Shown here: one piece after another, positions 44,633-59,873 of the stretch
Layout of the letters: the number at the start of each line of letters is the position of its first letter
How positions within the stretch are numbered: the stretch's first letter is position 1
Source: Podarcis muralis
Lineage: Eukaryota
Reading direction: 5' to 3'
Length of the DNA: 64,000 nt
Assembly: GCF_964188315.1 (NCBI RefSeq)
Contig: NC_135672.1
Coordinates: 13,640,001-13,704,000, forward strand
Made by a program: the position numbers and the translations under genes
The notes under the pieces: generated by a model
What the model saw: the letters and a program-made list of their open reading frames with translations, nothing else
What the model was told of the DNA's origin: nothing
Database searches by the model: none

Positions 44633-45238
44633 GTGAGAGGCAGTGAGAGATTTTACTTTCTTGGGCTCCATGATCACTGCAGATGGTGACAGCAGTCACA
44701 AAATTAAGAGATGCCTGCTCCTTGGGAGAAGGGCAATGACAGGCCTTGACAGCATCTTGAGAAGTAGAGACATCACCTTGCCAACAAAGGTCCGTATAGT
44801 TCAGGCTCTGGTTTTCCCAGTAGTGATGTATGGAAGTGAGAGCTGGACCATCCAGAAGGCTGATCTCCAAAGAATGGATGCTTTTGAATTATGGTGCTGG
44901 AGGAGACTCTTGAGAGTCCCATGGACTGCAAGAAGATCCAACCTCTCCATTCTGAAGGAAATCAGCCCTGAGGGCTCACTGGAAGAACAGATCCTGAAGC
45001 TGAGGCTCCAATACTTTGGCCACCTCATGAGAAGAGAAGACTCCCTGGAAAAGCCCCTGATGTTGTGAAAGATGGAGGGCGCAAGGAGAAGGGGACGACA
45101 GAGGATGAGATGGTGGGACAGTGTTCTCGAAGCTACCAGCATGAGTCTGACCAAACTGCGGGAGGCAGTGGAAGACAGGAGGGCCTGGCGTGCTCTGGTC
45201 CAGGGGGTCACGGAGAGGCGGACACGACTAAACAACAA
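44633..45238 (+). mobile_element. BovB (RTE) LINE 3' fragment
   Basis: DFTFLGSMITADGDSSHKIKRCLLLGRRAM...VFPVVMYGSESWTI...DAFELWCWRRLLRVPWTARRSN...LQYFGHLMRREDSLEK, followed by the characteristic BovB 3' tail ending GACTAAACAACAA. Confidence 0.92.
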
Positions 45239-46319
45239 AGTCCTTATGATAAAGACTAATGGCACCGAACCCCCCAAAACTGCAAAAAACTGTGTTATTT
45301 ACAATTTGTAAATGGAGTTTAATGGATGTTTAATAAAGTTAATTTGAATTAAAAGAAAGAAATGTTCAGCCTCTCATCTACCTCCCCAGCCAGGGAACCA
45401 CTTCACTGCGTCCGGAAACATCTCGATCACAATCCGCAGTGTGCAATAATAATAATAATAATAATAATTCATTAATTAAATTCCTATAAACCTGCCAGCT
45501 TTTAATAATCCTCACCTACCTCCCCAGCCAGCGACCCACTTCACTGTTTCCCAAAACATCCAGGGGGCTGCCCCTCTCCTCAAGCACAGCGCCTCCAGCT
45601 CATCCCCCTCCTCTGGGCGTCTGGGGCAGGGGAAACCCCCCACCCAGCCCACCCTTGAGTCCCCCTTTATGATGGCGGCGATGACAGTCCCTCTGCCCCC
45701 TTGGGAGGAGGGGGAGTCTGGCTGCCGAGCTGGGGCTGCTCTCATCCTTCCCCTCCCCGGTTTCAAGAGCTCCTCTGACTCTGTAGCGTTGGAAGGGGCT
45801 CCCAGGGTCATCTAGCCCAACCCGCAGGCAAAGGTCCCCTGGCAGAACACCACGCCGCCTCTCTTTATTCATTTCTTTATTTCATTTTTAAAAAATTCAT
45901 TACATTTCATTTATTTTAGTTTCAAAAAAATATGACTTCCTTCCCCCTTTCTGCGGTTCCTTAAATTAATTTTTTTATAAAAATATATTCTGCGTATCCG
46001 AATTCATTTCATCTGCTTAAAATATATACTCCTATGAAACTGCAGGTCATTACAACTATCCTGCCAGTGTCCTTGTCTGTTGGCAATTTATCTTTCAGTA
46101 TTCAATATTCTTTTATATATATAACAAGTTGGGTTATCTTCGATTTCTTAATCTCCCGGCAGGTTTCGCCTTTTCTGCAAAATCCCCTTTTTCCAGCAGC
46201 CGCGACGCTCTAGCCAATTCGCTCTTTCCCCCCTCCAGGAGCCGCGACGCTCTAGCCGGCTCTCTCAATGCCTCTTTCCCCCTCCCCTTCCGGGACCCGC
46301 GTTTCCGGCCGCGCCAGGC

Positions 46320-46343
46320 GGTTGCCGCGGCAACCAGGAAGTG
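46320..46343 (+). promoter_or_regulatory. Perfect palindromic RFX X-box with adjacent ETS site
   Basis: GGTTGCCGCGGCAACC (46320-46335) is its own reverse complement and fits GTTGCCnnGGCAAC; CAGGAAGTG at 46335-46343; ~75 bp upstream of ATG 46409. Confidence 0.7.
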
Positions 46344-46408
46344 CTGCCCGGCGGGCCTTCCGGTCCGCCGGTCAAAGCGTTCCCCCGGGGGAGGTTTCTT
46401 CTTCCGCC

Positions 46409-48703
46409 ATGGCCGACTCCTTCAAGGCGAGGAAGCTGCCCAGGGGGAAGCGGCGCTCCCCGGAGCCCCACGCCTACGACCCGTGGGGCTGGGGGGACGC
46501 CGAGTGGGACTGGGAGCTGCCGCCGCCGCCCCGGGTCTGCTGGGAGTCGGAGAGGCTGGCGGAGAGGGAGCCCCGCGCCCCCGTCGAGACGGCGCCCCGG
46601 GGGAGGGGCAAAGGGCGGGGTTCCTGGGGGGCCCGCGAGGAGCCCCCGAGCTGGGCGGGGCCCTGGAGGGGGAGGGGGGCTCGTGGAGGGGGGAGGGGGC
46701 GGGATCGGTGGGGGGGAGGGAGCCCCCCCAAGGAGGAGGAGGAGGAGGAAGAGGAAGAAAAACACTGGAGGGGCTCTCGCAGAGGGGGGCGGGGTTTTCG
46801 CAGAGGGGGGCGGGGTTTTCGCAGAGGGGGGAGGGGCCGGGATTCGTGGGGGGGAGGGAGCCCCCCCAAGGAGGAGGAGGAAGAGTCCTGGAGGGGGAGG
46901 GGCCGGGATCCGTGGGGGGGAGGGAGCCCCCCCAAGGAGGAGGAGGAAGAGCCCTGGAGGGGGAGGGGCCGGGATCCGTGGGGGGGAGGGAGCCCCCCCA
47001 AGGAGGAGGAGGAAGAGCCCTGGAGGGGGAGGGGCCGGGATCCGTGGGGGGGAGGGAGCCCCCCCAAGGAGGAGGAGGAAGAGCCCTGGAGGGGGAGGGG
47101 CCGGGATCCGTGGGGGGGAGGGAGCCCCCCCAAGGAGGAGGAGGAAGAGCCCTGGAGGGAAAGGGGTCCTCGCAGAGGGGGGAGGGGCTGGGATCCGTGG
47201 GAGGGAGGGAGGCCCCCCAAGGAGGAAGCGGAAGAAGAGCCCCCCCAGCAGCAGCATCAGGAGGAGGACCCCTTTAGCAGGAGGAGCCGGTGGGGCAGCC
47301 GGGAGAGGGAGCCCCCCTCGTGGGAGCAGCCGCCTCCGGCCAAAGCCCCCCGGAAATCCCACTGGGGGGGCAGCCCCAAGAGGGAAGCGGGGACGCGGGT
47401 GCTGCTGACGCCGCCAAGGCAGAGCAGCCCCGAGCAGGGGCCCCCCCACAGGCCGCGGGGCTGGGGGGAGTGGGACTCGGCCAGGCACGGGGTCCGCTCC
47501 CCCGGCAGCCCCCCTCGGGGTGGGAGCTGGTGGGGCGAGGCTGAGAGGAGGCGTGGGGAGAGCCCCGGCCGAGAGGAAAGGGGGCGCGGGAGGCAGGCCG
47601 AGGAGGGACCCCGGGACGAGGCGCCCTGGGGCAGCTCGGAGCACGGGGGCGTTTTGGGCAGCCTCGAGCGGCTGGCATGGGAGCAGGGTGGGGACCAGTG
47701 GAGGAACCCCGACTGGGCCAAGGACCAACCCGCCATCGTCACCAGGGGCGGAAGCCCCACAAGGTCCGACCGGCAGCACAGCCAGAGCAGAGACCTCGAC
47801 GGCTGGGGCAGCTCCGCCAGTTTCCAGAGCAGGTGGGCGGCCGACGGAACCGAGGAGGGGACCCCCGAGATGGAGGAGGAGCTGGGGTGGGACGCTGCCG
47901 GAGAGGACGGCGTGCCAGCAGGCTCAGACGGCGCCCACCCCACCCCGCAGGAGTGGACGCCGTGCCAGGAGGTGGTGGACTACTGGACGAGGGCGTGCCG
48001 CACCTGCCTGAGCTTCCGCCAGAGGAGGAGGCTCATGTTGTCCTGCCCGCGCCCCACCTTGCCCGACCGGAGCCACGAGACGCCCGCCCTCAACGCCGAC
48101 ATTGCCAGCCTGGGCGTTGCGCCGCAGCAGAGGGCAGAGCTGGTCGATGCCCAGAAACTGGGCTGGCTCCAGGACGAGGTTCTGGACACGCTGGCCCCGG
48201 CCATGAGCGTCTACGAGATGGCCGAAGAGGCCCTGGAGAAGCGGGCGCCTGTGGACCCCCTGGAATTGCGGGAGTGCGCCCAGCGCCTCCTCCGCCTCCT
48301 GGGCAGCCTGAGCGCCCGGCTGACCCTCCAACGCCGCGTCAAGGCCCTGCGCGCCATCAACCCCCGCCTGCAGTCCATCTGCTCAAAGATGACCAGCCGC
48401 AATTGCAACGGGATGCTCTTTGGCGAGGACAAAGTCCAGCTCCTGAAGGAGCTGCTGGCCAGATTCCCCCAGCTCACCCAGAACAACACCACCTACAAGC
48501 GGACCCGCACTCAGCGCCGGAAGAGCAAGGTGTACAGTGGCCAGCCACCCCAAGGCGCAGGTAAGGCCGCCTTTGCCCGCACCCAAGCCGGTGCCCAACC
48601 TCGCCTGACATTTTGGGGCCAACGGGGGTTCAAAAGGTTGGGGGGCGCCAGCTTGGGGATGCCCTGGGCAGCTCCAAAGTTGCGTTGCCTTTTAGCTGTT
48701 TAG
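46409..48703 (+). CDS. DIRS1-type retrotransposon ORF1/Gag-derived protein with WG/RGG-rich N-terminus (764 aa unspliced; 719 aa if spliced 48560 to 51309)
   Basis: Uninterrupted ORF with Kozak GCCATGG at 46409. 47951-48480 encodes EWTPC.EV..Y...R...R..L...CPRP.L...TP.L...QD.VLD...P...E.A..A...P.DP...E.AQR...LLG......RR...L..I.P.L...G.LFGE, the pattern I recall for vertebrate DIRS1 ORF1. No RT, RNase H or YR ORF nearby. Confidence 0.75.
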   Translation: MADSFKARKLPRGKRRSPEPHAYDPWGWGDAEWDWELPPPPRVCWESERLAEREPRAPVETAPRGRGKGRGSWGAREEPPSWAGPWRGRGARGGGRGRDRWGGGSPPKEEEEEEEEEKHWRGSRRGGRGFRRGGRGFRRGGRGRDSWGGGSPPKEEEEESWRGRGRDPWGGGSPPKEEEEEPWRGRGRDPWGGGSPPKEEEEEPWRGRGRDPWGGGSPPKEEEEEPWRGRGRDPWGGGSPPKEEEEEPWRERGPRRGGRGWDPWEGGRPPKEEAEEEPPQQQHQEEDPFSRRSRWGSREREPPSWEQPPPAKAPRKSHWGGSPKREAGTRVLLTPPRQSSPEQGPPHRPRGWGEWDSARHGVRSPGSPPRGGSWWGEAERRRGESPGREERGRGRQAEEGPRDEAPWGSSEHGGVLGSLERLAWEQGGDQWRNPDWAKDQPAIVTRGGSPTRSDRQHSQSRDLDGWGSSASFQSRWAADGTEEGTPEMEEELGWDAAGEDGVPAGSDGAHPTPQEWTPCQEVVDYWTRACRTCLSFRQRRRLMLSCPRPTLPDRSHETPALNADIASLGVAPQQRAELVDAQKLGWLQDEVLDTLAPAMSVYEMAEEALEKRAPVDPLELRECAQRLLRLLGSLSARLTLQRRVKALRAINPRLQSICSKMTSRNCNGMLFGEDKVQLLKELLARFPQLTQNNTTYKRTRTQRRKSKVYSGQPPQGAGKAAFARTQAGAQPRLTFWGQRGFKRLGGASLGMPWAAPKLRCLLAV
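46889..47152 (+). repeat. Coding minisatellite, 4 x 66 bp (WRGRGRDPWGGGSPPKEEEEEP) plus 3 degenerate flanking units
   Basis: TGG at 46889 recurs every 66 nt up to 47153; the frame is preserved. Confidence 0.95.
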
Positions 48704-48809
48704 CACGTGTCCGTCAGCCTCCAAGTCTCCCCGGATGTGGTTGGGCTACAACTTCCAACACCCTGGAGACCCGGCAGGAGGGAAATGCTGGGAGCAGAAA
48801 CACGTTTTA

Positions 48810-49179
48810 GTCGGGTGGCGCTGTGGTCTAAACCACTGAGCCTCTTGGGCTTGCTGATCGAAAGGTTGGCGGTTCCAATCCCCGTGACAGGGTGAGCTCC
48901 TGTTGCTCTGCCCCAACTCCTGCCAACATACCAGTTTGAAAGCATGCCAGGGCAAGTAGATAAAGAGGTACTGCTCTGGTGGGAAGGTAAACGGTGTTTC
49001 CATGCGCTCTGGTTTCCGCCATGCGCCAGAAGCGGTTTAGTCCTGCTGGCCACACGACCCGGAAAGCTGTCTGTGGACAAACACCGGCTCCCTCGGCCCG
49101 AAAGTGAGACGAGCGCCGCAATCCCATAGCCGCCTTGGACTGGACTTAACCGTCCAGGGGTCCTTTGCTTTTACCTTTT
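48810..49179 (+). mobile_element. Sauria SINE
   Basis: SINE head, body and ACCTTT tail. Confidence 0.85.
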
Positions 49180-49636
49180 AAACGCCGAATAGCATATATA
49201 AGTTTGAAAACCCACTTTGACAAGAAGCGAAGAAGAGCGTGCCAGCTGTGTGGAAGAGCTCTGTGGATTTCCAGTAGGCCTCCCTCACCCCAGAGTGCCT
49301 GGGGCTCCTTTCTTTAAGTCGCCTTGGCTAGCAGTAGCCAAAGGCACTGAGCCCTGTGGCCCGTTCCATGGCGGTGCTGCTCCTTGTGTCTTAACTGGAG
49401 TCCTTCTTCGTTGCTAAGCCTTCTTCCACAGGTGGCTTAGCTGGCCACTGAGAGGACCAGCTGTTTTTAATTTTTTCAGAGAGGAAGGGGCATGTTGCCT
49501 CCCGCTGAACAGCCAGGGGAACTTTATTTTTTTGCCCCACAGCTTTGGGGAGACAAGCATCTCCTCAGTTATCAGGAAGACCAAAACAGGGTCTTTCCTG
49601 GAATCAAATTCCAAGCCGTATTATTATTATTATTAA

Positions 49637-50003
49637 GGGACGCAGGTGGCGCAGTGGTCTAAACCACTGAGCCTCTTGAGCTTGCTGATTGGAAGGTTGG
49701 CAGTTCGAATCCCTGCGATGGGCTGAGCTCCCATTGCTCTGTCCCAGCTCCTGCCAACCTAGCAGTTCAAAAGCATACCAGTGCAAGTAGATAAATAGGT
49801 ACCGCTGCGGCGGGAAGGTAAACAGCATTTCCGTGCGCTCTGGTTTCCATCACGGTGTCCTGTTGTGGCAGAAGTGGTTTAGTCCTGCTGGCCACGTCCG
49901 GGAAAAAGCTGTCTGCGGACAAAGGCCGGCTCCCTTGGCCTGAAAGCAGAGATGAGCAGCGTGACCACAGAGTTGCCTTGGACTGGGTCCTTTACCTTTT
50001 ACC
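49637..50003 (+). mobile_element. Sauria SINE
   Basis: GGGACGCAGGTGGCGCAGTGG head through CCTTTACCTTTTACC tail. Confidence 0.88.
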
Positions 50004-50011
50004 TACCATTA

Positions 50012-50044
<33 letters not shown>

Positions 50045-50323
50045 TACATCTCTACCCGACCTTTTTCGCCAAGGAACTCAAGGTGGTGGAATGCTTTGCT
50101 TCAAGGAGGAGTTCCAGCAGACGGACACCGTCTCACAAGGTGAGCTGCAACCCACACAAATGTATTAGGTGCTAGGAGCTGAGATATATGAACTAGGCAC
50201 CAAACGGCTCCTTAAACCAAGTTGCCAAAAGGGAACGTGCAGTTGCTCTTTTTTTATGCCAGATGGCTCCAAAGTCTTAATTTTCAAATGATGGCCTGGC
50301 ACTGATTGATCCAGTTAAACATT

Positions 50324-50684
50324 GTGCTGTGGTCTAAACCACTGAGCCTCTTGGGCTTGCCAACCGTAAGGTCAGTGGTTCGAATCCCCGCGATGACGGG
50401 CTGAGCTCCCATTGCTCTGTCCCAGATTCTGCCAGCCTAGCAGTTCGGAAGCACACCAGCGCAAGTAGATAAACTGCGGTGTTGGGAAGGTAAACGGTGT
50501 TTCCATGCGCTGGTTTCTGTCACGGTGTCCTGTTGCGCCAGAAGCAGTTTAGTCCTGCTGGCCACATGACCCGGAAAGTTGTCTGCGGACAAAGGCCAGG
50601 TCCCTCGGCCTGAAAGCGAGATGAGCACCTCAACCCCAAAGTTACCTTGGACTGGACTTAACCGTCCAGGGTCCTTGACCTTTT
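50324..50684 (+). mobile_element. Sauria SINE, slightly 5'-truncated
   Basis: Same SINE body as the other copies. Confidence 0.85.
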
Positions 50685-52337
50685 TCCGTACTTCTTTTTC
50701 TTAATGGTGACACAGACCACTAATAACGTAGGAATATTCTTCACAACGGTGAGCAGGGGGAAGCGAAGGCAACAATGCGCTCTAACGCCATTTGCCGCTC
50801 CTGCTCAGGCTGCCCAGAAAAAGCATTTTGGTTCCAGAAATTCAAAATCTAACTGATAAAATTCTACAGGATCTGGGTGTTAGCGTGTGAAAGCGGTCCA
50901 GATCCGGGGATCCCCAGATGACTCTCGCAGGCGGCAAAATGCACATGGTGAATTTCGAACGCCAATCAGGGATAGCGAGTTCGTGATTTGCCGACACAAA
51001 GTCTGGGGGTTCAATCCCAGGTTTGGGGTTTCCTTTTGAGGTGGCCGACTATCCTTCACCCCAGGGTCTTAGGCAGAGGTCGGAGGGCTGTCTGCCAGGG
51101 GCTGGGCTAGATGACCGCTGGTGCCCCTTCCCCCTCTACAGCTCTGTGATTCTGTTATTCTAGGTATCTGGGCCGGCACAGAATCCCTGCCTGAGACCCA
51201 GCAGGACCATGCGCTGAACTGGTCCGACTTCGGTTCCTGATCGGTCGGGGACGGGGCAGCGGAAAAACCAATGGTGCCCGCTTGCCAAACTCCCCCCCCT
51301 TTTCTCAGGGGCTTAACTGGCCCCACAGACACCCAGAAGGAACCCCCCTCTTACCAAGGGCAGAGGGAACTATTTTTGCAACAGAGAGGGGGAGCAGAGG
51401 GGCCAGGAAGCCGGAAGCGGACCGTTCCTCTCGACGGAAGAGACTCCCCCCCCACTTGCCCCCCCCTGCCTGCTCAAGAGTCTGTCCCTTGGCGAGCCAA
51501 GCAGGGCCACCATTGAGCAGTTGGGGGGCCACAGGGCAGAATGGAGCCAAGAAGACAACACTTTTAAACACGACTCTCCCAATCCTCTCTTGACTCTGCA
51601 GCGAGACTGTCTGCCCCCCACCTGGGGGGGCAAGCTCAAGCAGGGGCGTTTTATTGCAAGCCCCCCCCCCCCTTTGTGTGAAAGGCCTCTTGGTTTTCAG
51701 AGAGAAGACATAGCTTCCTTCTAGTGCAAGAAGAGTTTTTCTCTCCCAACGGTGCAAAACTGTTTCTGTTTGAACTTGATTTTGTTGTTGAATATTTTCT
51801 GTGGCGGGGGCTGCTTGCTGGCAGCAGGAAAACCCAGACCCCTCCTTTTTAAAGGCCTTTTGCCTCGCAACAGAAGGGGGCACCCTTTACAACTCTTGGG
51901 CTTTCCTGCATTTTCGTTTCCTGACGGAGGCGTCTTGTGGCAGGGAGTTCCAGCTGGGCTCATATATTTTTTTGCCTACTTCCCCCCTCAAAAAAAAGTT
52001 TTCGCCTGGGGGCAGGAAGCAGACCCTCCATGGGACTTTTTTCTATTTTGGCCGATGGTTTTCCCGTGTCGGATCTCTGGCGGACTCTCTTTTTTTCCTC
52101 CTCCACCCGAAATCGGCTGCTTGGCTGAAGAAACCACATCCCGACGGCTGAGGTCCGAGAGGAGACCCCCCCAGGTTAAGAGGACCACGTTTGCTCTGTT
52201 CCCTGAAGGACGTTTGATGGATTCCTGCAAAGAGGGTCTGGGGGAACCGACCGATTCCTTATTGGTTTGCAACCGAAGCAGCGATCGGAACTGGAGCAAG
52301 AGCTTGGAAGTCTGTTTCTGGGGACCTTCTCTAGTTG

Positions 52338-54549: not shown

Positions 54550-57500
54550 TTATTATTTATACCCCACTCATCTGGCTGGGTTCCCCCAGCCGCTCTGGGC
54601 GGCTTCCAGCAAAATATTAAAATATAATAATCAAAGGTTAAAAGCTTCCCAACTTGTTTTGTTGTTTTCGTTTATTTACTTTTGTTTGAAGGTCGGTGTA
54701 TAAATTTTCGTAATAATAATAAGAATAGCAATAGTAACATAAGGTAATATTTTGACTGAACACAACTGCCAGCAATATTTGAGCGCAGAGCATGTTCTGT
54801 AGACAAAAGCCCACCAAATCTTGGCTCGTCTTCCTCCAGCAAAGGGGCTTTTGGGATGCCCTACCTTGCAAAGCTGTTGTGGACTTTAAATATATATATA
54901 TATATATATATATTCAAATGTAAAAAAAAAAGGCCTGCATGTTGGTTAGCGGACATCAGTGCTGATGATTGAAGGCTGCCAGGGGAAAATTAAAATGAAA
55001 GCAGCTTTTTGAGACAAATTTTGGCTTCTCATTTGCCGCCAAAGAGTTCCTGTTTCTGCAGTTTTGCAAAACAACCCGCTTTTGAGAGGTAGATTCTGAT
55101 TTTGGTTGCATGTTCCCCTCAATCCTCTAAAGGCCCATCATCATTTTGTTGGCACTGTCTCTTCCCCCAGATAAGAGCCCAAGATCAAGAGCAAAACCCC
55201 CGCCTGTCTGAATAGGGAATCGGGTCAGCCAGAAAAACCCGCTGCCTGCTTGATGTCCAAAAATCAAACCCGGCCCAACTTCTTCAAATATCCCTTTAGC
55301 CCAGAAAGGCTCTTTAGATGGTTTATCAATCTGCTATTTTATAATGGCTTTGCTCTTCATGATTTGATCTCACCACCGCTTCCCCGCAAGAGTTGCAAAA
55401 AGTGGATTAAAAAACCCCAACGGCCAATTTTTAAAAACCCAAATAAAGGAATATATTGTGACTGTAATGAATTCACTGTAAGGGGGGGGGGATTCACTCT
55501 CAATCAATTGAAGAATGCAAAGAAGCAATCTTCCCTCTCCTATTTGGGATAATAATAATAACCAGCTGCCCCCCTTCACCCCCTCCGGCCAGGAGAAGAT
55601 GCCGCCACCTGATGCCCCACTCGCACCCCAAGACCTCCTGTCGTCCCCCCCCAGCCGCGTCAGGAGCAAAGTGGAGAAGGAAGAGGGGCCCCCGCCACTG
55701 GTGACCTCTCCTGTGGCCTCTTTGGGGGGTGAGTAGGGGCGGAAAATCAGGCCTATTCCCCCCCCAAAAAAAACACAAAGCCAGCTTTCTAGTCCTCATG
55801 AAGGCGCAAGGAAGTGGCCTTGGTCCATGTTGCTCTGTACTGCATGCTCGGACCGGCAGCAATTCATATGGGGAAGGGGGGGATGTGGAGCTGGGGGGGG
55901 GGGCCTTCGCAAGCCCAGCAGGGACCCTGCCGCGATCCCCAGCCCGGAGGGAGCCACCAGTGACGTCTCTTCTTCCCAGGCCCAGCCAATTCGGGGGTTT
56001 CGGCGACCCACAGCCACCCCACGCCGAGCGGCGGGGGGCGGAAGCAGGACCTGCGGCTGCCCAAGAGGAGACCCCCAGGTGAGCTGGAGGCCGGGGCGGC
56101 CCTTTTTAGCAGGGGGCTGAGGAACGGGGCGCACGGGGCCTAGTTTGGGGGTGGCCCCCTCTCCTTTCTCCCCAAAGGTGGGGCCGAGAACCTTGCCCCT
56201 CCTCCCCGGCTCTGCTGCACGACATCCACATTTTCCCAGGCTGAGAGCTTTGCCTACGTTTTCCTCCGGCCCCCCACCACTGCCAAGAGGCCCTTGGAAG
56301 ATTATCCAGGGAGGGGAACACGGCCCTCACGCCGAACAGGATTCCCAGTTTCCTATGGATCCTTTCGGTCGATGTGTCTTTTGCCCTAGAGAGGACGTGT
56401 GTCGGTTGTTCCCATTTCACAGAAGGGGAAAATAGAGGCACGGGGCTGCGAGCTGCTCCAGGCGGGGCTGCCAAGGCCTCTTGAATCATAGAATAATGGA
56501 ACTGTATTGTTGGAAGGGGCCCCCCAGGGGTCATCCAGCCCAGCCCCCTTCAGCTAATTCTCTCGCCTCGCCCTAGGGAGACGCTACCAGTGCTCTGGGG
56601 ACGGCTGCCGCTTGGCCTGCCGCAGCATGAAGGAGCTGCTGGATCACATTCGGGTTCATTATCGGCCCACACAGTCGGTGGAGGGTAAGCCCGGTTTTGG
56701 GGGGGGGGGAAGAGGGTTGGCGAGATCTCGAATCTGACTCCGAGCTGCCTTTGCTCCCTCGCACTTTCCATCGGAGTAACTATTTTTGGGGTGTGTGTAA
56801 AGTTTTTCCATTTTTTAAATGTAAATACAACAGAGAAAAATTTGTAAGGTGAAAAGCAAGGCTATTGAAATGGGCTTGTAGAAGGAATGAGCCCAGCTGC
56901 CTCTCCTGTTTCCCAGGGAAGATTTTCCGCTGTTCCTCCCCGGGCTGCGTGGAATCGTTCCCCAACATGCAAGTTCTCATGGAACACATCAAGGTGCACT
57001 ACAAGCCCAACCGCTACTTCAAGTAAGGCCATATTCTTATTCTGATGATGATGATGATCTAGAGGGGGCCAAGTAAATCTACTCCCAAAGCTCAGGGGGT
57101 TTTTCCGGTATTTTATGCATTGTGATTTGCTATTTCTATCCATCACAGAAGAGTCATTCTTTATTATAATACATGTATACTGTCTAATTAATTACTTGCT
57201 GGCGTTTGATTTTGGCGTTTACTATGGGATTCTAATGCATTATTGCACATAGCTTTATTTGGTATAAGCTGTTTATTTTAAAGTCGTTGTGGCTTTTTAT
57301 ATAGGATCCGATTGTTGTTGTTAATGTTTGAAGTTTTATTATTAATTTTGTGTGTGTTGGAAGCCGCCCAGAGTGGCTGTGGCAATTTAGCCACATGGGC
57401 GATGAAGTAGTAGTAATAATAATAATGATGATGATGATAAAAACAAAAAAATTCCTTCCAGTAGCACCTTAAAGACCAACTAAGTTAGTTCTTGGTATGA

Positions 57501-59873
57501 GCTTTCGTGTGCATGCACACTTCTTCAGATACCAATCTGAAGAAGTATCTGAAGTATCTGAAGAAGTGTGCATGCACACGAAAGCTCATACCAAGAACTA
57601 ACTTAGTTGGTCTTTAAGGTGCTACTGGAAGGAATTTTTTTGTTTTGACTATGGCAGACCAACACGGCTACCTATCTGTAACTGGATGATGATGATGATG
57701 ATGTCAGGAGCTGCCCGAAGGCGTGGGCGATGGAGGCCCCCCCCCCCCGTTTCTCAATCCTGTTTGGAGCAGCTGGGATTGAGCCGCCAACCTCCAGACT
57801 CAAAAGATGGGTGTAGCGTGTGGGAACGGGCCCTCCAGAGGTCCTCCATCCCAACCCCCTGCAACCTGTCCCCCCCCCTCCAGGTGTGAGAACTGCATGA
57901 CGCGTTTCCGGACATACCGGTCCCTCTTCAAGCACCTCCACAGTTGCTCCTCCGCCGGAACCGCCGCCGGTGCTGCCGCTGCCACCGCCGACACCCCACC
58001 CCTGGCGCCGGAGAAGCCCCTCCCGGAAAAGGAGCCCCCCGGGAAGCTGCTGGAGGTCCTCCCCAAACTGGAGACGGTCATACAGCAGCTCAGGAAGGAA
58101 GCCATCCTCCCCGGCGAGATGGAGGTCTCGCCGCCGGCCCCCGACCCGCTCCCTGCCGGCCCCCTGGGGCCCCTGCCCGCCCTGCCCCCGGGGCCCCACG
58201 CCTTCCCTCTGCTGGAGCCCTCCCTCTTTGGACCCCCGCCGCCCCTGGCCAGGTTTCCAGGGCCGGCTCCCCACACGCTCCCGGGACCCTTCCTGCCTTA
58301 CGTCCATCCGGGGAGCTACGCCTTGCCTCCCGCCGCCGTCCAGAGCCGCCTCCGTCCCTTCCTGCCAGGACAGGGACTCCCCATCTCCAACGCCGTCTGG
58401 AAGAAAAGCCAGGGTGAGCGGAAGACCTTCCCCCCCCCTCGCCCCAGGAGGGTCTCTCTGCCCCCCCCCACATCGTTACCTGTCTGCCAGTCCAACGATT
58501 GCGCCCAATTTACTCAGATTTGAGATGGCCCTAATCCAGGTTTCTAGTCCTCCTGACTGCAACAGGGGGCGGGAATACTCAAGAGGTTTGGGAACTGCCC
58601 TTAAATGTTTCACTCTGACGGCAGGGCGCTCTCTGGAAGGCTCCGCTTGATTCAGAAGCTGCAGCCAGGCAAGATGCTGCAGAGAAAGTGCTTTAAGCAT
58701 TAACAGGCCAACACGTGGCTCATAATGTTCTAACAAAATATATGTCATCTGTATTATTTCACAATTCTTAAACCATGGGTAGGGAAACTAAGGCCGGATC
58801 CAACCCAATCACCTTCTCAATTACATAAGAAGAATGTGTCCTTTTATTGCAAATGCATCTCTGGGTTATTTGTGGGGCACAGGAATTCATTTTTTTCCTG
58901 GCCCCCCACACGGTCTGAGGGACAGTGGGCCAGGCCCCTGCTGAAAAAGTTTGCTGACCCCTGATTTAAATCAATTTGATTTAAATCAAATCCACCCTGG
59001 AGAGAAACCTCCCCAGATATTTAGGAAGCTGGCGCAGGTCTCCATCTCCTCTTAAGCGTATTTGTCCGCTTGCTCCGGGGCTGACCCTTCTCTTTTTTGG
59101 CGCCCCGCAGGGCACTCCTCCAACAGCCGCATCGTGTGGGAGCACACGCGAGGGCGCTACAACTGCCTGCAGTGCTCCTACTCGACGGCGTCGCGGGAGG
59201 AGGTCACCCAGCACGTCGAGGACCACCGCAAGAACCCCTCCCCGCCCGGGCGCCTGGACGGAGAAATGGGTGAGTGGGGGGCTGGCGGGGGACCTCCCCT
59301 TCGTCCCCGGCGGCTGGGTTGGCTGGCAGGCGCGGGGGACCCCCGCTCAGGACTACAGCTCCCGTTGCCCCAGGAGTTGTAGTTTGGCAGCACCCGGTTT
59401 CCCCAAATCCTACTCAGAGCAGAGCCCAGGGGTCTACTTGAGTTTGGCCAATGCTGGGATGTAACGTTGGACACCGAGAAGGTTGGGCTACAACTCCTAC
59501 CAGGTGGAGGTGAGGAGAACTGTAGTTTGGCAGCGGCCGGAGGGGCAAAGGTTCCCCAACGGCTTCTCACTGACCTGGCTAGGCGCACTGGGAGTTGTAG
59601 TCCAACCATCTCTAGCTGGGGAGCGCCCAGTTTAGCCGAGGCGGTTTGACTCCACCTGTTGGGGTTTTTTTTGCAGTTTTTATCAGTTCTGCGTTTCTGC
59701 AACAGACAAGTTTTGCTTTGTGATGGATTTTGAATGTCCCTTAAAAACAACTACTGATGCCTCCCCCCCCCCCCGTTTTCCTCTTTCCTCCACCAGACTT
59801 TGGGGTGGGGCTCCCCTCGTTCCACCCCAGACTGACGCCGGAAGTGGAGAACACCCTCTTCTCCCCGCTGTGA
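53940..59873 (+). CDS. ZNF414: Zinc finger protein 414 (405 aa, 8 exons)
   Basis: Exons 53940-53942 (ATG only), 55593-55728, 55980-56078, 56577-56684, 56917-57022, 57884-58413, 59111-59269, 59797-59873; phases consistent (1218 nt). HYKPNRYFKCENCMTRFRTYRSLFKHLH and AVWKKSQGHSSNSRIVWEHTRGRYNCLQC are characteristic of ZNF414. Exons 1-3 and 8 are less certain. Confidence 0.9.
54501..54549. repeat. (TAA)n microsatellite
   Basis: Direct reading. Confidence 0.95.
57440..57682. mobile_element. Penelope-like element terminal (pLTR) remnant in head-to-head inverted arrangement
   Basis: Perfect 93-bp arms at 57440-57532 and 57554-57646 with a 21-nt spacer; the sequence resembles squamate Penelope-like termini as I recall them. 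Confidence 0.7.
57554..57591 (+). ncRNA. Minimal type I hammerhead ribozyme-like motif (mirror copy on minus at 57494-57533)
   Basis: GUAU-CUGAAGA-A-GUGUG(CAUG)CACAC-GAA-AGCU-C-AUAC: core nucleotides, stem II hairpin, palindromic AGCU helix III, stem I GUAU/AUAC. Confidence 0.55.

Follow-up and report, generated by a model that had tools for sequence, protein, structure and literature searches.

Argonaute-binding domains consist of tryptophan repeats placed within hypervariable, disordered and charged sequence of low hydropathy, where nothing but the W motifs endures (PMC4615383, PMC2910046), and the composition of validated hooks favors W, G, N, S, A and D and avoids L, I, M, Y and C (PMC2910046). 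According to the literature, metazoan AGO-clade proteins conserve the Trp-binding pockets that receive such motifs, whereas these pockets vary in the PIWI clade (PMC12477606). A second group of relevant proteins derives from DIRS1-like retrotransposons, a family defined by RT, methyltransferase and tyrosine recombinase domains (PMC3266345). The only host uses of a DIRS1-like ORF1 that we found described in the literature are LAP2alpha (TMPO) and ZNF451-L2a, both mammalian, in which one large exon encodes the ORF1-derived domain (PMC4495291). Here we analyze a gene, contained in a 64,000-nucleotide stretch of Podarcis muralis DNA (the window), that joins a Trp-rich N-terminal tail to a domain of this second kind, likewise in one large exon.

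The gene corresponds to the Podarcis RefSeq locus LOC114588709, of which no account was found in our literature searches; it is spliced and expressed, and it encodes 764 residues here. The open reading frame extends from 46409 to 48703 on the plus strand of the window, as do all features given below, and its first 514 codons (46409-47950) fall within exon 1. The 5′ UTR spans 46316-46408; its 46316 limit, where the RNA-derived contig X1 starts, sets a lower bound on the 5′ end of the mRNA, and stranded reads cover 46368-46551. The start codon (Kozak gccATGg) opens a conserved N-terminal segment (residues 1-61, 46409-46591) that contains DPWGWGD.EWDWE and is defined by conservation, a dN/dS of 0.30-0.40 and RNA coverage. 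It is followed by a lacertid repeat block (residues 62-262, 46592-47194), made of RG/RGG-rich units and a 22-aa unit and delimited from its tandem repeats and from lacertid genomes, and by a distal, non-repetitive, Trp-rich disordered tail (residues 263-514, 47195-47950), marked by RNA coverage and a dN/dS of 0.45-0.50. The helical domain derived from a DIRS1-like ORF1 (“putative GAG”; residues 515-697, 47951-48499) was recognized by profile search and an AlphaFold2 model, and a basic linker leads to the end of exon 1 (48500-48560), where junction reads locate the splice donor CAG/gtaagg. Exon 2 (22 codons, 50074-50139) is bounded by GT..AG junctions in RNA reads, in agreement with tblastn of the P. 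raffonei and P. muralis models, and the coding part of exon 3, including the stop codon, lies at 51164-51240 according to RNA, tblastn and translation, with a 3′ UTR that reaches past 51500. The junction from 48560 to 50074 was present in four of four RNA runs, the second one connects 50139 to 51164, and a single RNA contig links the three exons. The gene lies between a Ran_BP1-domain gene and ZNF414 in both Podarcis and Lacerta; at the locus of the gecko Eublepharis the downstream ZNF414 is also listed, the upstream neighbor being matched in the two lacertids only.

The first-pass annotation of this DNA had described the N-terminal region as fused to a Gag domain. The fusion, within one exon, to a retrotransposon-derived domain was borne out, and the “Gag” proved to be a DIRS1-like ORF1, which is called GAG by position only (PMC4495291), with no capsid fold detected. 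A profile of the squamate orthologues yielded 225 hits, in which the C-terminal 183-aa domain was homologous to multi-copy anuran proteins at E values from 1e-32 to 1e-8, and in the long anuran matches RVT_1, Dam-type methyltransferase and phage-integrase domains are present as well. Anuran elements are the nearest transposon relatives, and orthologues of the lizard gene were found only in squamates. Unlike DIRS1 elements, the lizard gene is single-copy, syntenic and spliced, lacks pol/YR and bears a Trp-rich tail of 400-600 aa; it is also intact, expressed and constrained (dN/dS 0.35-0.51). To judge from these sequence relationships, it is a single-copy squamate gene domesticated from the ORF1 of a DIRS1-like retrotransposon, and the domestication is an independent event in Squamata, common to geckos and lacertids.

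When modeled with AlphaFold2 from a 13-sequence alignment, the domain gave a poor prediction (pLDDT 52), while an alignment of 54 sequences raised the pLDDT to 91.7, and the resulting model was all-helical. Comparison of this model with the PDB by Foldseek and VIA-align produced no significant match, only generic helical ones, the best VIA Z (7.5) being against generic helical hairpins. A retroviral CA fold was not detected (Foldseek match only at E 4, TM 0.16), and the match to LAP2alpha (2v0x_A) was not significant either (rank 18, E 3.1, TM 0.30); as the crystal is a dimer and the model a monomer, a distant relation is still conceivable. At the sequence level, the reading frame matched no Gag or zf-CCHC Pfam families, the 54 aligned domains matched no Pfam family at E ≤ 1, including LAP2alpha PF11560, and domain profiles gave no meaningful match among PDB sequences; an ESM Atlas feature search with the domain returned bacterial rows only, all of them below threshold. 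The likeness to the mammalian cases extends beyond the ORF1 origin: a zinc-finger gene adjoins in both and is joined in RefSeq models (ZNF414 in the lizard, ZNF451 in the mammal), and both are under purifying selection, with dN/dS of 0.35-0.5 in the lizard vs. 0.16-0.38 in mammals (PMC4495291). In contrast to LAP2alpha and ZNF451-L2a, the lizard domain stands C-terminal to a new Trp-rich tail and belongs to a separate upstream gene, not to an alternative 3′ exon. The lizard gene would represent a third, independent domestication of a DIRS1-like ORF1.

The tail comprises 514 residues on recounting (about 510 had been reported), and it contains 36 Trp (7%), 17 of them beside Gly, as had been claimed. 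The RG/RGG, SP and poly-Glu elements listed with them were also found (32 RG, 7 RGG, 13 SP, poly-Glu blocks and three RRGGRGF units). The distal part shows motifs such as RSRWGS, SHWGGSPKRE, GWGEW, SWWGE, PWGS and DGWGS. The excess of W-G adjacency is modest (17 vs. 11.5 ± 2.8 in shuffles), and part of the W count is due to tandem repeats, one of 66 bp (5.2 copies at 46827-47166, 98% identity) and one of 21 bp (3.2 copies at 46770-46836): the 22-aa repeat unit carries two Trp, one WGGGSPPK site and one Glu run, and merging its four near-identical copies leaves 8 W and 4 WG fewer. Disorder fits the tail because its hydropathy is low (0.30, the Uversky boundary being 0.42), 38% of its residues are charged and only 5% are ILVFMYC. 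Pfam recognized no family at E ≤ 1 on the whole reading frame, and comparison of the tail with PDB sequences gave nothing meaningful. A sequence search with the distal tail (residues 263-514) matched lacertid orthologues only, so nothing indicates an origin of the tail by capture from a known host gene.

The tryptophans are the feature that persists among species. In 13 squamate orthologues, from Gekkota to Lacertidae, the tail has a W content of 3.7-7.0%, and low hydropathy, a disorder-like composition and multiple Trp recur in all of them, with a median W-W spacing of 8.5-23 aa. Over the whole tail (residues 1-514), 24 of 25 aligned W are kept between Podarcis and Lacerta, vs. 73% for other residues. 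Three independent clade alignments gave a W identity of 0.59-0.66, compared with a shuffled baseline of 0.33-0.40, and other residues stayed near their own baseline; MAFFT prefers W-W matches, a bias for which the shuffling controls without removing it. Around 268 W sites the context is directional, with enrichment of G at +1 (2.3-fold), S at +2 (2.1-fold), P at +3 (2.8-fold) and E at +4 (2.0-fold). On the aligned sequences, Trp is thus the best-conserved residue of the tail, in a W-G-S-P context, over a squamate divergence of about 200 My. Two other motif readings were set aside: DPW (AP-2-binding) is limited to the lacertid repeat unit, and a W-acidic (kinesin light chain) motif lacks an acidic context around W-[DE] on reading the sequences. 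Transposon-borne ORF1 proteins have a tail of another kind, about 200 aa long and Ser/Pro-rich, and the means over 29 such tails are 0.75% for W, 5% for G and 22% for hydrophobic residues. Since they lack a Trp-rich tail, that of the lizard gene arose after domestication.

Judged by its composition and conservation, the tail forms a highly charged and intrinsically disordered array of Trp short linear motifs with the core W-[G/D]-S-P. In carrying many Trp in a long, disordered, low-hydropathy, charged and hypervariable region, it resembles GW182/TNRC6, NRPE1, SPT5L, Tas3 and viral suppressors. As in Ago hooks, W-G is the commonest context, the W are kept and the spacers are not, and W spacing is mostly 8-25 aa. 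However, there is no homology to GW182/TNRC6, and the lizard protein lacks their UBA, RRM, PAM2 and Q-rich parts (Pfam, whole ORF, E ≤ 1). Moreover, the tail differs from canonical Ago hooks in being R/E/P-rich, which the score matrix penalizes, and nearly Asn-free, and its motif is a directional W-G-S-P, unlike their general GW/WG. The hook predictor that had been proposed was run as the “dos” composition score of Karlowski 2010, re-implemented from Table 1 of PMC2910046, with a threshold of 6.99 and a “medium” class from 25. The best tail domains exceeded the threshold in every orthologue, at 21-71 half-bits (“medium”, a few just below 25); however, similar values came from shuffled tails (37 ± 9.5) and from the +1 frame of the same DNA (66), so that the score is mainly a reflection of glycine richness. 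The mean over the whole tail was about 0, owing to R/E/P.

These features can be accommodated in a model that we favor tentatively, in which a Trp-motif docking tail has been placed on a domesticated ORF1 domain. That the tail is a functional, Trp-dependent module we regard as very probable. Its tryptophans have been retained by selection amid turnover of the spacers, and the tail would serve as a multivalent docking platform; that it docks proteins with Trp-binding pockets is plausible from its sequence, if short of probable. The attached helical ORF1 domain would probably self-associate, an assumption taken from the LAP2alpha precedent, to which no link was detected, and the protein might thereby bridge or cluster several partners. 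By analogy with GW182/TNRC6, the leading candidate partners are AGO-clade Argonautes, followed by CCR4-NOT, although a partner that is specifically an Argonaute, while a plausible lead, seems rather unlikely. The PIWI/nuage part of the first-pass annotation is weakened by the variability of the PIWI-clade Trp pockets (PMC12477606). Control by proline-directed kinases is suggested because Ser-Pro, often as S-P-x-R/K, trails many of the W-G motifs and might be phosphorylated there. In its most elaborate form, which we consider improbable, the gene would encode a squamate GW-type adaptor of transposon origin, whose Trp tail recruits AGO-clade Argonautes (or CCR4-NOT) and whose ORF1 domain recognizes or co-assembles with retroelement ORF1/RNP particles, so that small-RNA effectors would be linked to the restriction of retrotransposons or to an RNP granule peculiar to the lineage, with proline-directed phosphorylation beside each Trp as the control.

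What makes the case unusual is the gain of a long tail that has preserved essentially nothing but its tryptophans, which is the hallmark pattern of GW182-type scaffolds. Should Argonaute or CCR4-NOT bind the tail, this would add to vertebrates a new GW protein, derived from a transposon, and give a clean natural case of de novo evolution of a short-linear-motif array. Otherwise, the gene would offer a tractable system for the function of conserved W-G-S-P arrays, with at least 13 orthologues and a variable repeat number; Anolis is CRISPR-amenable.

Much of this pattern could also be produced by a tail without any dedicated Trp-pocket partner, in which Trp and Arg act as cation-π stickers within a Gly/Pro/Glu spacer, leading to self-association or non-specific RNA binding, with the ORF1 domain adding valency. 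Indeed, all orthologue tails contain about 15% R, 15-18% G and about 4-7% W at very low hydropathy; their spacers evolve freely while W and the overall composition persist; and lacertids have gained repeats of RGG type, a motif classically linked to RNA binding and condensates. However, the two- to three-fold enrichment of a directional W-G-S-P-E context is more typical of a recognized linear motif than of generic stickers, and the usual aromatic stickers, Tyr and Phe, are nearly absent from the tail. We consider this explanation a serious one, but somewhat unlikely.

A different role had been attributed to the RG/RGG units, namely binding of Tudor domains once methylated, for which SMN or TDRDs would be candidate partners. 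The window does contain GRGRG, five RGRGRD and three RRGGRGF, and the genomes of P. raffonei and L. agilis contain related units, with fewer repeat copies in the former and three diverged ones in the latter, all in frame; the idea, derived from protein models, that the block is Podarcis-specific was consequently rejected, as L. agilis has it too. Beyond lacertids, most squamate tails hold 4-14 RG and 0-3 RGG, approximately what chance gives for 15% R and 15% G, and the 7 RGG of the Elgaria tail come with internal repeats of its own. Hence, of the motif conservation that was to be looked for in orthologues, the W enrichment and positions hold across Squamata, while RG/RGG is at chance in most non-lacertids. 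The repeat block is also the least constrained part of the tail (dN/dS up to 0.8) and is not confirmed in RNA; at best, Tudor binding would be an add-on specific to lacertids. Because the RG/RGG enrichment is limited to this block, Tudor binding cannot be the ancestral function, and the Tudor platform was not sustained; we regard it as very unlikely. In the docking model, the block would be a later, lineage-specific addition.

It is equally doubtful that the tail is a neutral by-product, that is, low-complexity sequence tolerated from GC-rich, purine-rich DNA and replication slippage, next to an ORF1 domain that alone is functional. The tail DNA has 75% G+C and 7% T, all three sense frames are almost stop-free, repeat copy number shifts fast between Podarcis species, and tail similarity is lost outside Lacertidae. 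In addition, the dN/dS near 0.5 denotes only moderate constraint. Nevertheless, W exceeds its expectation from base composition four-fold (36 vs. about 9, or 1.7%, at T = 7.3%), and this excess is confined to one frame, the remaining two sense frames having only 4-6 W each. Trp is, moreover, the best-conserved residue over squamate divergence. Three lacertid genomes and one gecko genome preserve an intact exon-1 ORF, and Podarcis, Lacerta and Zootoca have in common the MADS/MAGS start and the WGWG block, with MADSG in Rhineura. In frame-blind nucleotide alignments, gaps were divisible by three in 14 of 14, 7 of 7 and 9 of 12 cases, and the tail dN/dS was 0.45-0.51 in the coding frame vs. 0.9-1.5 in the other two.

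Stranded RNA-seq gave sense coverage over 46368-46590, the start codon included, and 47104-48560, unbroken from the distal tail into the ORF1 domain. The kept frame, the gaps in threes, the frame-specific dN/dS and the RNA over the start codon together demonstrate that the tail is coding, and 46409-47950 is a translated N-terminal tail beginning at the ATG at 46409, so that a downstream start, raised earlier as a possible refutation, was not upheld. No RNA reads or contigs fell on 46591-47187, the GC-extreme repeat block, whose presence in the mature mRNA accordingly rests on comparative evidence. The idea that 46409-47950 lies outside the protein, as 5′ UTR or intron, with translation starting downstream as in the RefSeq P. 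muralis isoforms X2/X3, could draw on this RNA gap and on the RefSeq P. raffonei model, which omits part of the block that the genome contains, but it is scarcely credible and is largely refuted for residues 1-61 and 263-514, given that the RNA-covered ATG, the frame and the constraint are conserved, and that the X2/X3 start, in another frame near 47320, is explained by a G run one base shorter together with a G>A change at 47320 that is silent in the main frame, with no indel there in RNA reads. An upstream in-frame ATG at 46268 is not kept in P. raffonei or L. agilis. Within the 5′ UTR, the sequence also reads as a 16-bp palindrome (46320-46335) followed by GGAA.

The plus-strand open reading frame that holds the tail (the Trp-rich N-terminal 514 codons of exon 1) starts at 46268 or 46409 and ends at 48703; the ATG at 46409 lies in a gccATGg context, and codon 514 from there ends at 47950. 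The first-pass annotation had described 46409-47950 as rich in WG/GW, RG/RGG and SP motifs and Glu runs, and this description was accurate: the tail contains 36 Trp (7.0%), 17 of them adjacent to Gly, together with 32 RG, 7 RGG, 13 SP and long Glu runs. It is composed of 18% Gly, 15% Glu, 15% Arg and 13% Pro, with just 5% ILVFMYC; its normalised hydropathy is 0.30 versus the Uversky boundary of 0.42, and 38% of its residues are charged. The motif counts are inflated by two tandem DNA repeats, one encoding RRGGRGF units (46770-46836, 21 bp x 3.2) and the other a 22-residue unit that combines a WGGGSPPK site with two Trp and a run of Glu (46827-47166, 66 bp x 5.2, 98% identity). The length of the ORF is no proof of coding here, since the DNA of the tail (G 47.5%, C 27%, A 18%, T 7.3%) is so poor in T that its sense frames are nearly stop-free, and each of the three plus-strand frames runs over 350 codons without a stop across 46129-47400 (ORFs 46129-47277, 46268-48703 and 46341-47408). 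The Trp enrichment is frame-specific: base composition predicts 1.7% Trp, about 9 residues; the main frame has 36, with 4 and 6 in the remaining two sense frames, and about one third of all T in this DNA falls in main-frame TGG codons. The excess of W-G adjacency over composition is modest (17 versus 11.5 +/- 2.8 in shuffles).

The coding status of the tail follows from comparative evidence. The exon-1 ORF, including the repeat block (lacertid RG/RGG-rich tandem repeats, 46592-47194, residues 62-262), is intact in the P. raffonei and L. agilis genomes, and its equivalent is intact in Eublepharis. The start is conserved (MADS in Podarcis and Zootoca, MAGS in Lacerta, MADSG in Rhineura) and the upstream ATG at 46268 is not; gap lengths in frame-blind nucleotide alignments of the tail are divisible by three in 14/14, 7/7 and 9/12 cases; and dN/dS (Nei-Gojobori) is 0.45-0.51 in the main frame versus 0.88-1.53 when the identical aligned DNA is read in either of the two other frames, the C-terminal domain (47951-48499) giving 0.35-0.51. 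Sense-strand RNA covers 46368-46551. These observations show a tail that is translated, from 46409 rather than from a start downstream of it, and under a constraint that is real, yet moderate. An untranslated stretch and a neutral by-product are both poorly supported readings, although the open frames and the moderate constraint might speak for the latter.

A search with the C-terminal part led to the P. muralis gene LOC114588709, annotated as 'uncharacterized', and to orthologues in Lacerta, Zootoca, Sceloporus, Pogona, Anolis, Gekko, Eublepharis, Paroedura, Sphaerodactylus, Hemicordylus, Tiliqua, Rhineura, Elgaria and Varanus, whose NCBI names ('collagen-like', 'filaggrin-2-like', 'SRRM-like', 'eIF3A-like') mirror low complexity only. 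All nameable matches above 200 bits were squamate, and there were no snakes among the nameable matches of this search. The neighbours of the gene in P. raffonei and L. agilis are a minus-strand Ran_BP1-domain gene on one side and, on the gene's own strand, ZNF414 on the other; the Eublepharis listing gives downstream ZNF414 only. In the window, ZNF414 exons occupy 55592-59870 (+), separated by about 4.3 kb from the last coding exon upstream of them. In Pogona vitticeps, a second model with the domain (LOC110072575, 258 bits), on the contig of the Pogona orthologue, fuses it to an SH3-like domain and the core of a retroviral integrase, and may be a tandem paralogue or a model mis-joined to a neighbouring endogenous retrovirus.

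The gene model was examined with RNA data under the same species label, comprising two stranded RNA-seq runs and two small contig sets, mapped to 46000-51500. One contig begins at 46316, coverage is unbroken over 47104-48560, the GT..AG junctions 48560/50074 and 50139/51164 are present in all four data sets, and exons 1, 2 and 3 are joined within one contig. The spliced product, of 764 residues with a stop ending at 51240, agrees with the P. raffonei model and not with the RefSeq P. muralis isoform models X2 and X3, which continue into ZNF414; the RNA favours termination in exon 3 (51164 onward) rather than this fusion. The GC-extreme repeat block (46591-47187) has zero coverage, contigs stop at its edges and no junction is reported, so that its presence in the mRNA is supported by the genome comparison and not by RNA. 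X2 and X3 begin in a different frame ('MGAAASS...') and lack the Trp-rich N-terminus, a start that appears to arise from a G run near 47345-47351 that is one base shorter, together with a G>A at 47320 that creates an ATG and is silent in the main frame. Since RNA reads carry the G>A and no indel in the G run, the animals sampled have an intact main frame, and the truncation in these models looks like an artefact of assembly or annotation. One Varanus model, like X2 and X3, also fuses the gene to ZNF414, and this proximity and these fused models recall the mammalian ZNF451/LAP2alpha arrangement.

The first-pass annotation had called the C-terminal domain "Gag", a label supported as to its retrotransposon origin and not as to a capsid fold. 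A profile of the squamate domains, searched against 1.84 billion representatives, retrieved beyond the squamate orthologues about 200 proteins at E 1e-32 to 1e-8, the nameable ones being multi-copy anuran genes (Bufo, Hyla, Pelobates, Pelodytes, Rana, Spea) and the long ones bearing RVT_1, Dam-type methyltransferase and phage-integrase (tyrosine recombinase) domains. DIRS1-like retrotransposons are defined by these three domains, and their first ORF is a 'putative GAG' (PMC3266345), so called by position only and without clear homology to retroviral Gag (Abascal et al., PMC4495291). The AlphaFold2 model from a 54-sequence alignment is confident and all-helical (pLDDT 91.7, pTM 0.84); Foldseek gave no match at E <= 0.001, with LAP2alpha (2v0x_A) at rank 18 (E 3.1, TM 0.30) and retroviral capsid only at E 4, TM 0.16, and VIA-align gave generic helical hairpins (Z <= 7.5). 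Searches for a Pfam LAP2alpha match and a PDB sequence match were negative. By its profile matches the domain is DIRS1-ORF1-derived, a capsid fold is not supported by the predicted structure, and a LAP2alpha link is not demonstrated. The gene is squamate-restricted, expressed, spliced and derived from DIRS1 ORF1. A DIRS1-ORF1-like segment also ends an MDM1 model of the frog Rhinophrynus dorsalis (residues 557-675, E 6e-11), possibly one more DIRS1 insertion that was exonised or mis-annotated.

Transposon ORF1 proteins carry N-terminal sequence of a different kind: in 29 of them, the 100-420 residues preceding the domain average 0.75% Trp (maximum 2.4%), ~5% Gly, 5% Arg and ~22% hydrophobic residues. 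A search with the non-repetitive part of the tail found lacertid orthologues only, Pfam and PDB searches with the tail gave no match, and none of these searches revealed a known host gene as its source. The tail was therefore not inherited from the element, and is either a post-domestication novelty or diverged past recognition.

What is conserved in the tail is its Trp. P. muralis and L. agilis share 24 of 25 aligned Trp versus 250/343 (73%) of other residues (binomial estimate, p ~0.004), and Trp content is 3.7-7.0% in 13 squamates. In alignments of geckos, of iguanians and of a mixed set (scincoid, anguid, amphisbaenian, lacertid), Trp was the best-conserved residue type in all three (identity 0.59-0.66; other residues 0.29-0.48). 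Because the aligner itself prefers W-W matches, shuffled tails were aligned as a control, and gave 0.33-0.40 for Trp and 0.25-0.27 for the rest; in iguanians and the mixed set the Trp are kept and the spacers essentially randomised. The context of 268 Trp sites is directional, with G (34%, x2.3) or D (x2.8) at +1, S (x2.1) at +2, P (x2.8) at +3 and E (x2.0) at +4, and weak upstream preference. A recurrent form is WGSP-x-R/K-E, which places a Ser-Pro-x-Arg/Lys site immediately after W-G; we take this site to resemble a proline-directed (CDK/MAPK-type) kinase consensus. The alignments thus show the conserved feature to be a Trp array in W-G-S-P context.

The RG/RGG motifs, proposed earlier as Tudor-binding, fared differently. 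Podarcis has 32 RG and 7 RGG, versus 4-14 and 0-3 per tail in most other squamates, about chance level for 15% Arg and 15% Gly; Elgaria is an exception (7 RGG, with its own internal repeats). The clusters lie in the repeat block, shared in diverged form by L. agilis, varying in copy number even among Podarcis species and under the weakest constraint (dN/dS 0.46-0.81). The Tudor/methyl-arginine idea could therefore apply to lacertids only, at most as an add-on.

The Argonaute-hook proposal was examined with the 'dos' domain score of Karlowski et al. 2010, re-implemented from Table 1 (PMC2910046), with a P = 0.01 threshold of 6.99 half-bits and a 'medium' class of 25-150. Every orthologue has WG/GW domains above threshold, the best at 21-71 half-bits (most 'medium', few just below 25), while validated NRPE1 and SPT5L exceed 150 (PMC2910046) and 7/10 transposon ORF1 controls lack a scoring domain. 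Shuffled tails, however, score 37 +/- 9.5, and the tail DNA read in its +1 frame scores 66, so the score here is glycine-driven and not discriminating, a weakness acknowledged by its authors (PMC2910046). Unlike validated hooks in the 'dos' matrix, the tail is rich in the penalised R, E and P and almost without Asn. It fits qualitatively the published description of Argonaute-binding regions, in which Trp act as short linear motifs within hypervariable, disordered, low-hydropathy, charged sequence (PMC4615383). A recent survey found the three Trp pockets to be strongly conserved in metazoan AGO-clade proteins, with variation in the PIWI clade (PMC12477606), which favours a partner from the AGO clade over one from the PIWI clade.

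The tail is probably a functional Trp-dependent module. Tentatively, it could dock Trp-pocket proteins, the Trp array offering a multivalent surface on a helical, probably self-associating domain, possibly tuned by phosphorylation of the Ser-Pro beside W-G; candidate partners would be AGO-clade Argonautes first and CCR4-NOT second, Argonaute binding as such being a plausible lead, though less likely than docking in general. The main rival, only slightly less likely than docking, is a Trp/Arg sticker tail of a generic kind that would serve condensation or RNA binding; the directional Trp context speaks against it. Two mammalian domestications of DIRS1 ORF1 have been shown, LAP2alpha and ZNF451-L2a (Abascal et al., PMC4495291); the lizard gene, of which literature searches found no description, would be a third, independent case, and unlike those two it carries a GW-protein-like Trp array on its DIRS1-ORF1 domain.

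Some further elements were observed around the gene. A perfect 16-bp, X-box-like palindrome of the GGTTGCC GC GGCAACC type (within 46320-46343), followed by CAGGAAGT, lies at the 5' end of the RNA contig starting at 46316, and could confer RFX/ETS control. Introns 1 and 2 hold interspersed repeats resembling tRNA-derived SINEs (48760-49130, 49680-49860 and 50416-50600). In the RNA reads and contigs these repeats have very high depth and numerous chimeric 'joints', and they account for most non-canonical RNA joints. Upstream of the gene, the ORF at 44643-45068 (+) resembles the C-terminal portion of the reverse transcriptase of a BovB/RTE-type LINE.
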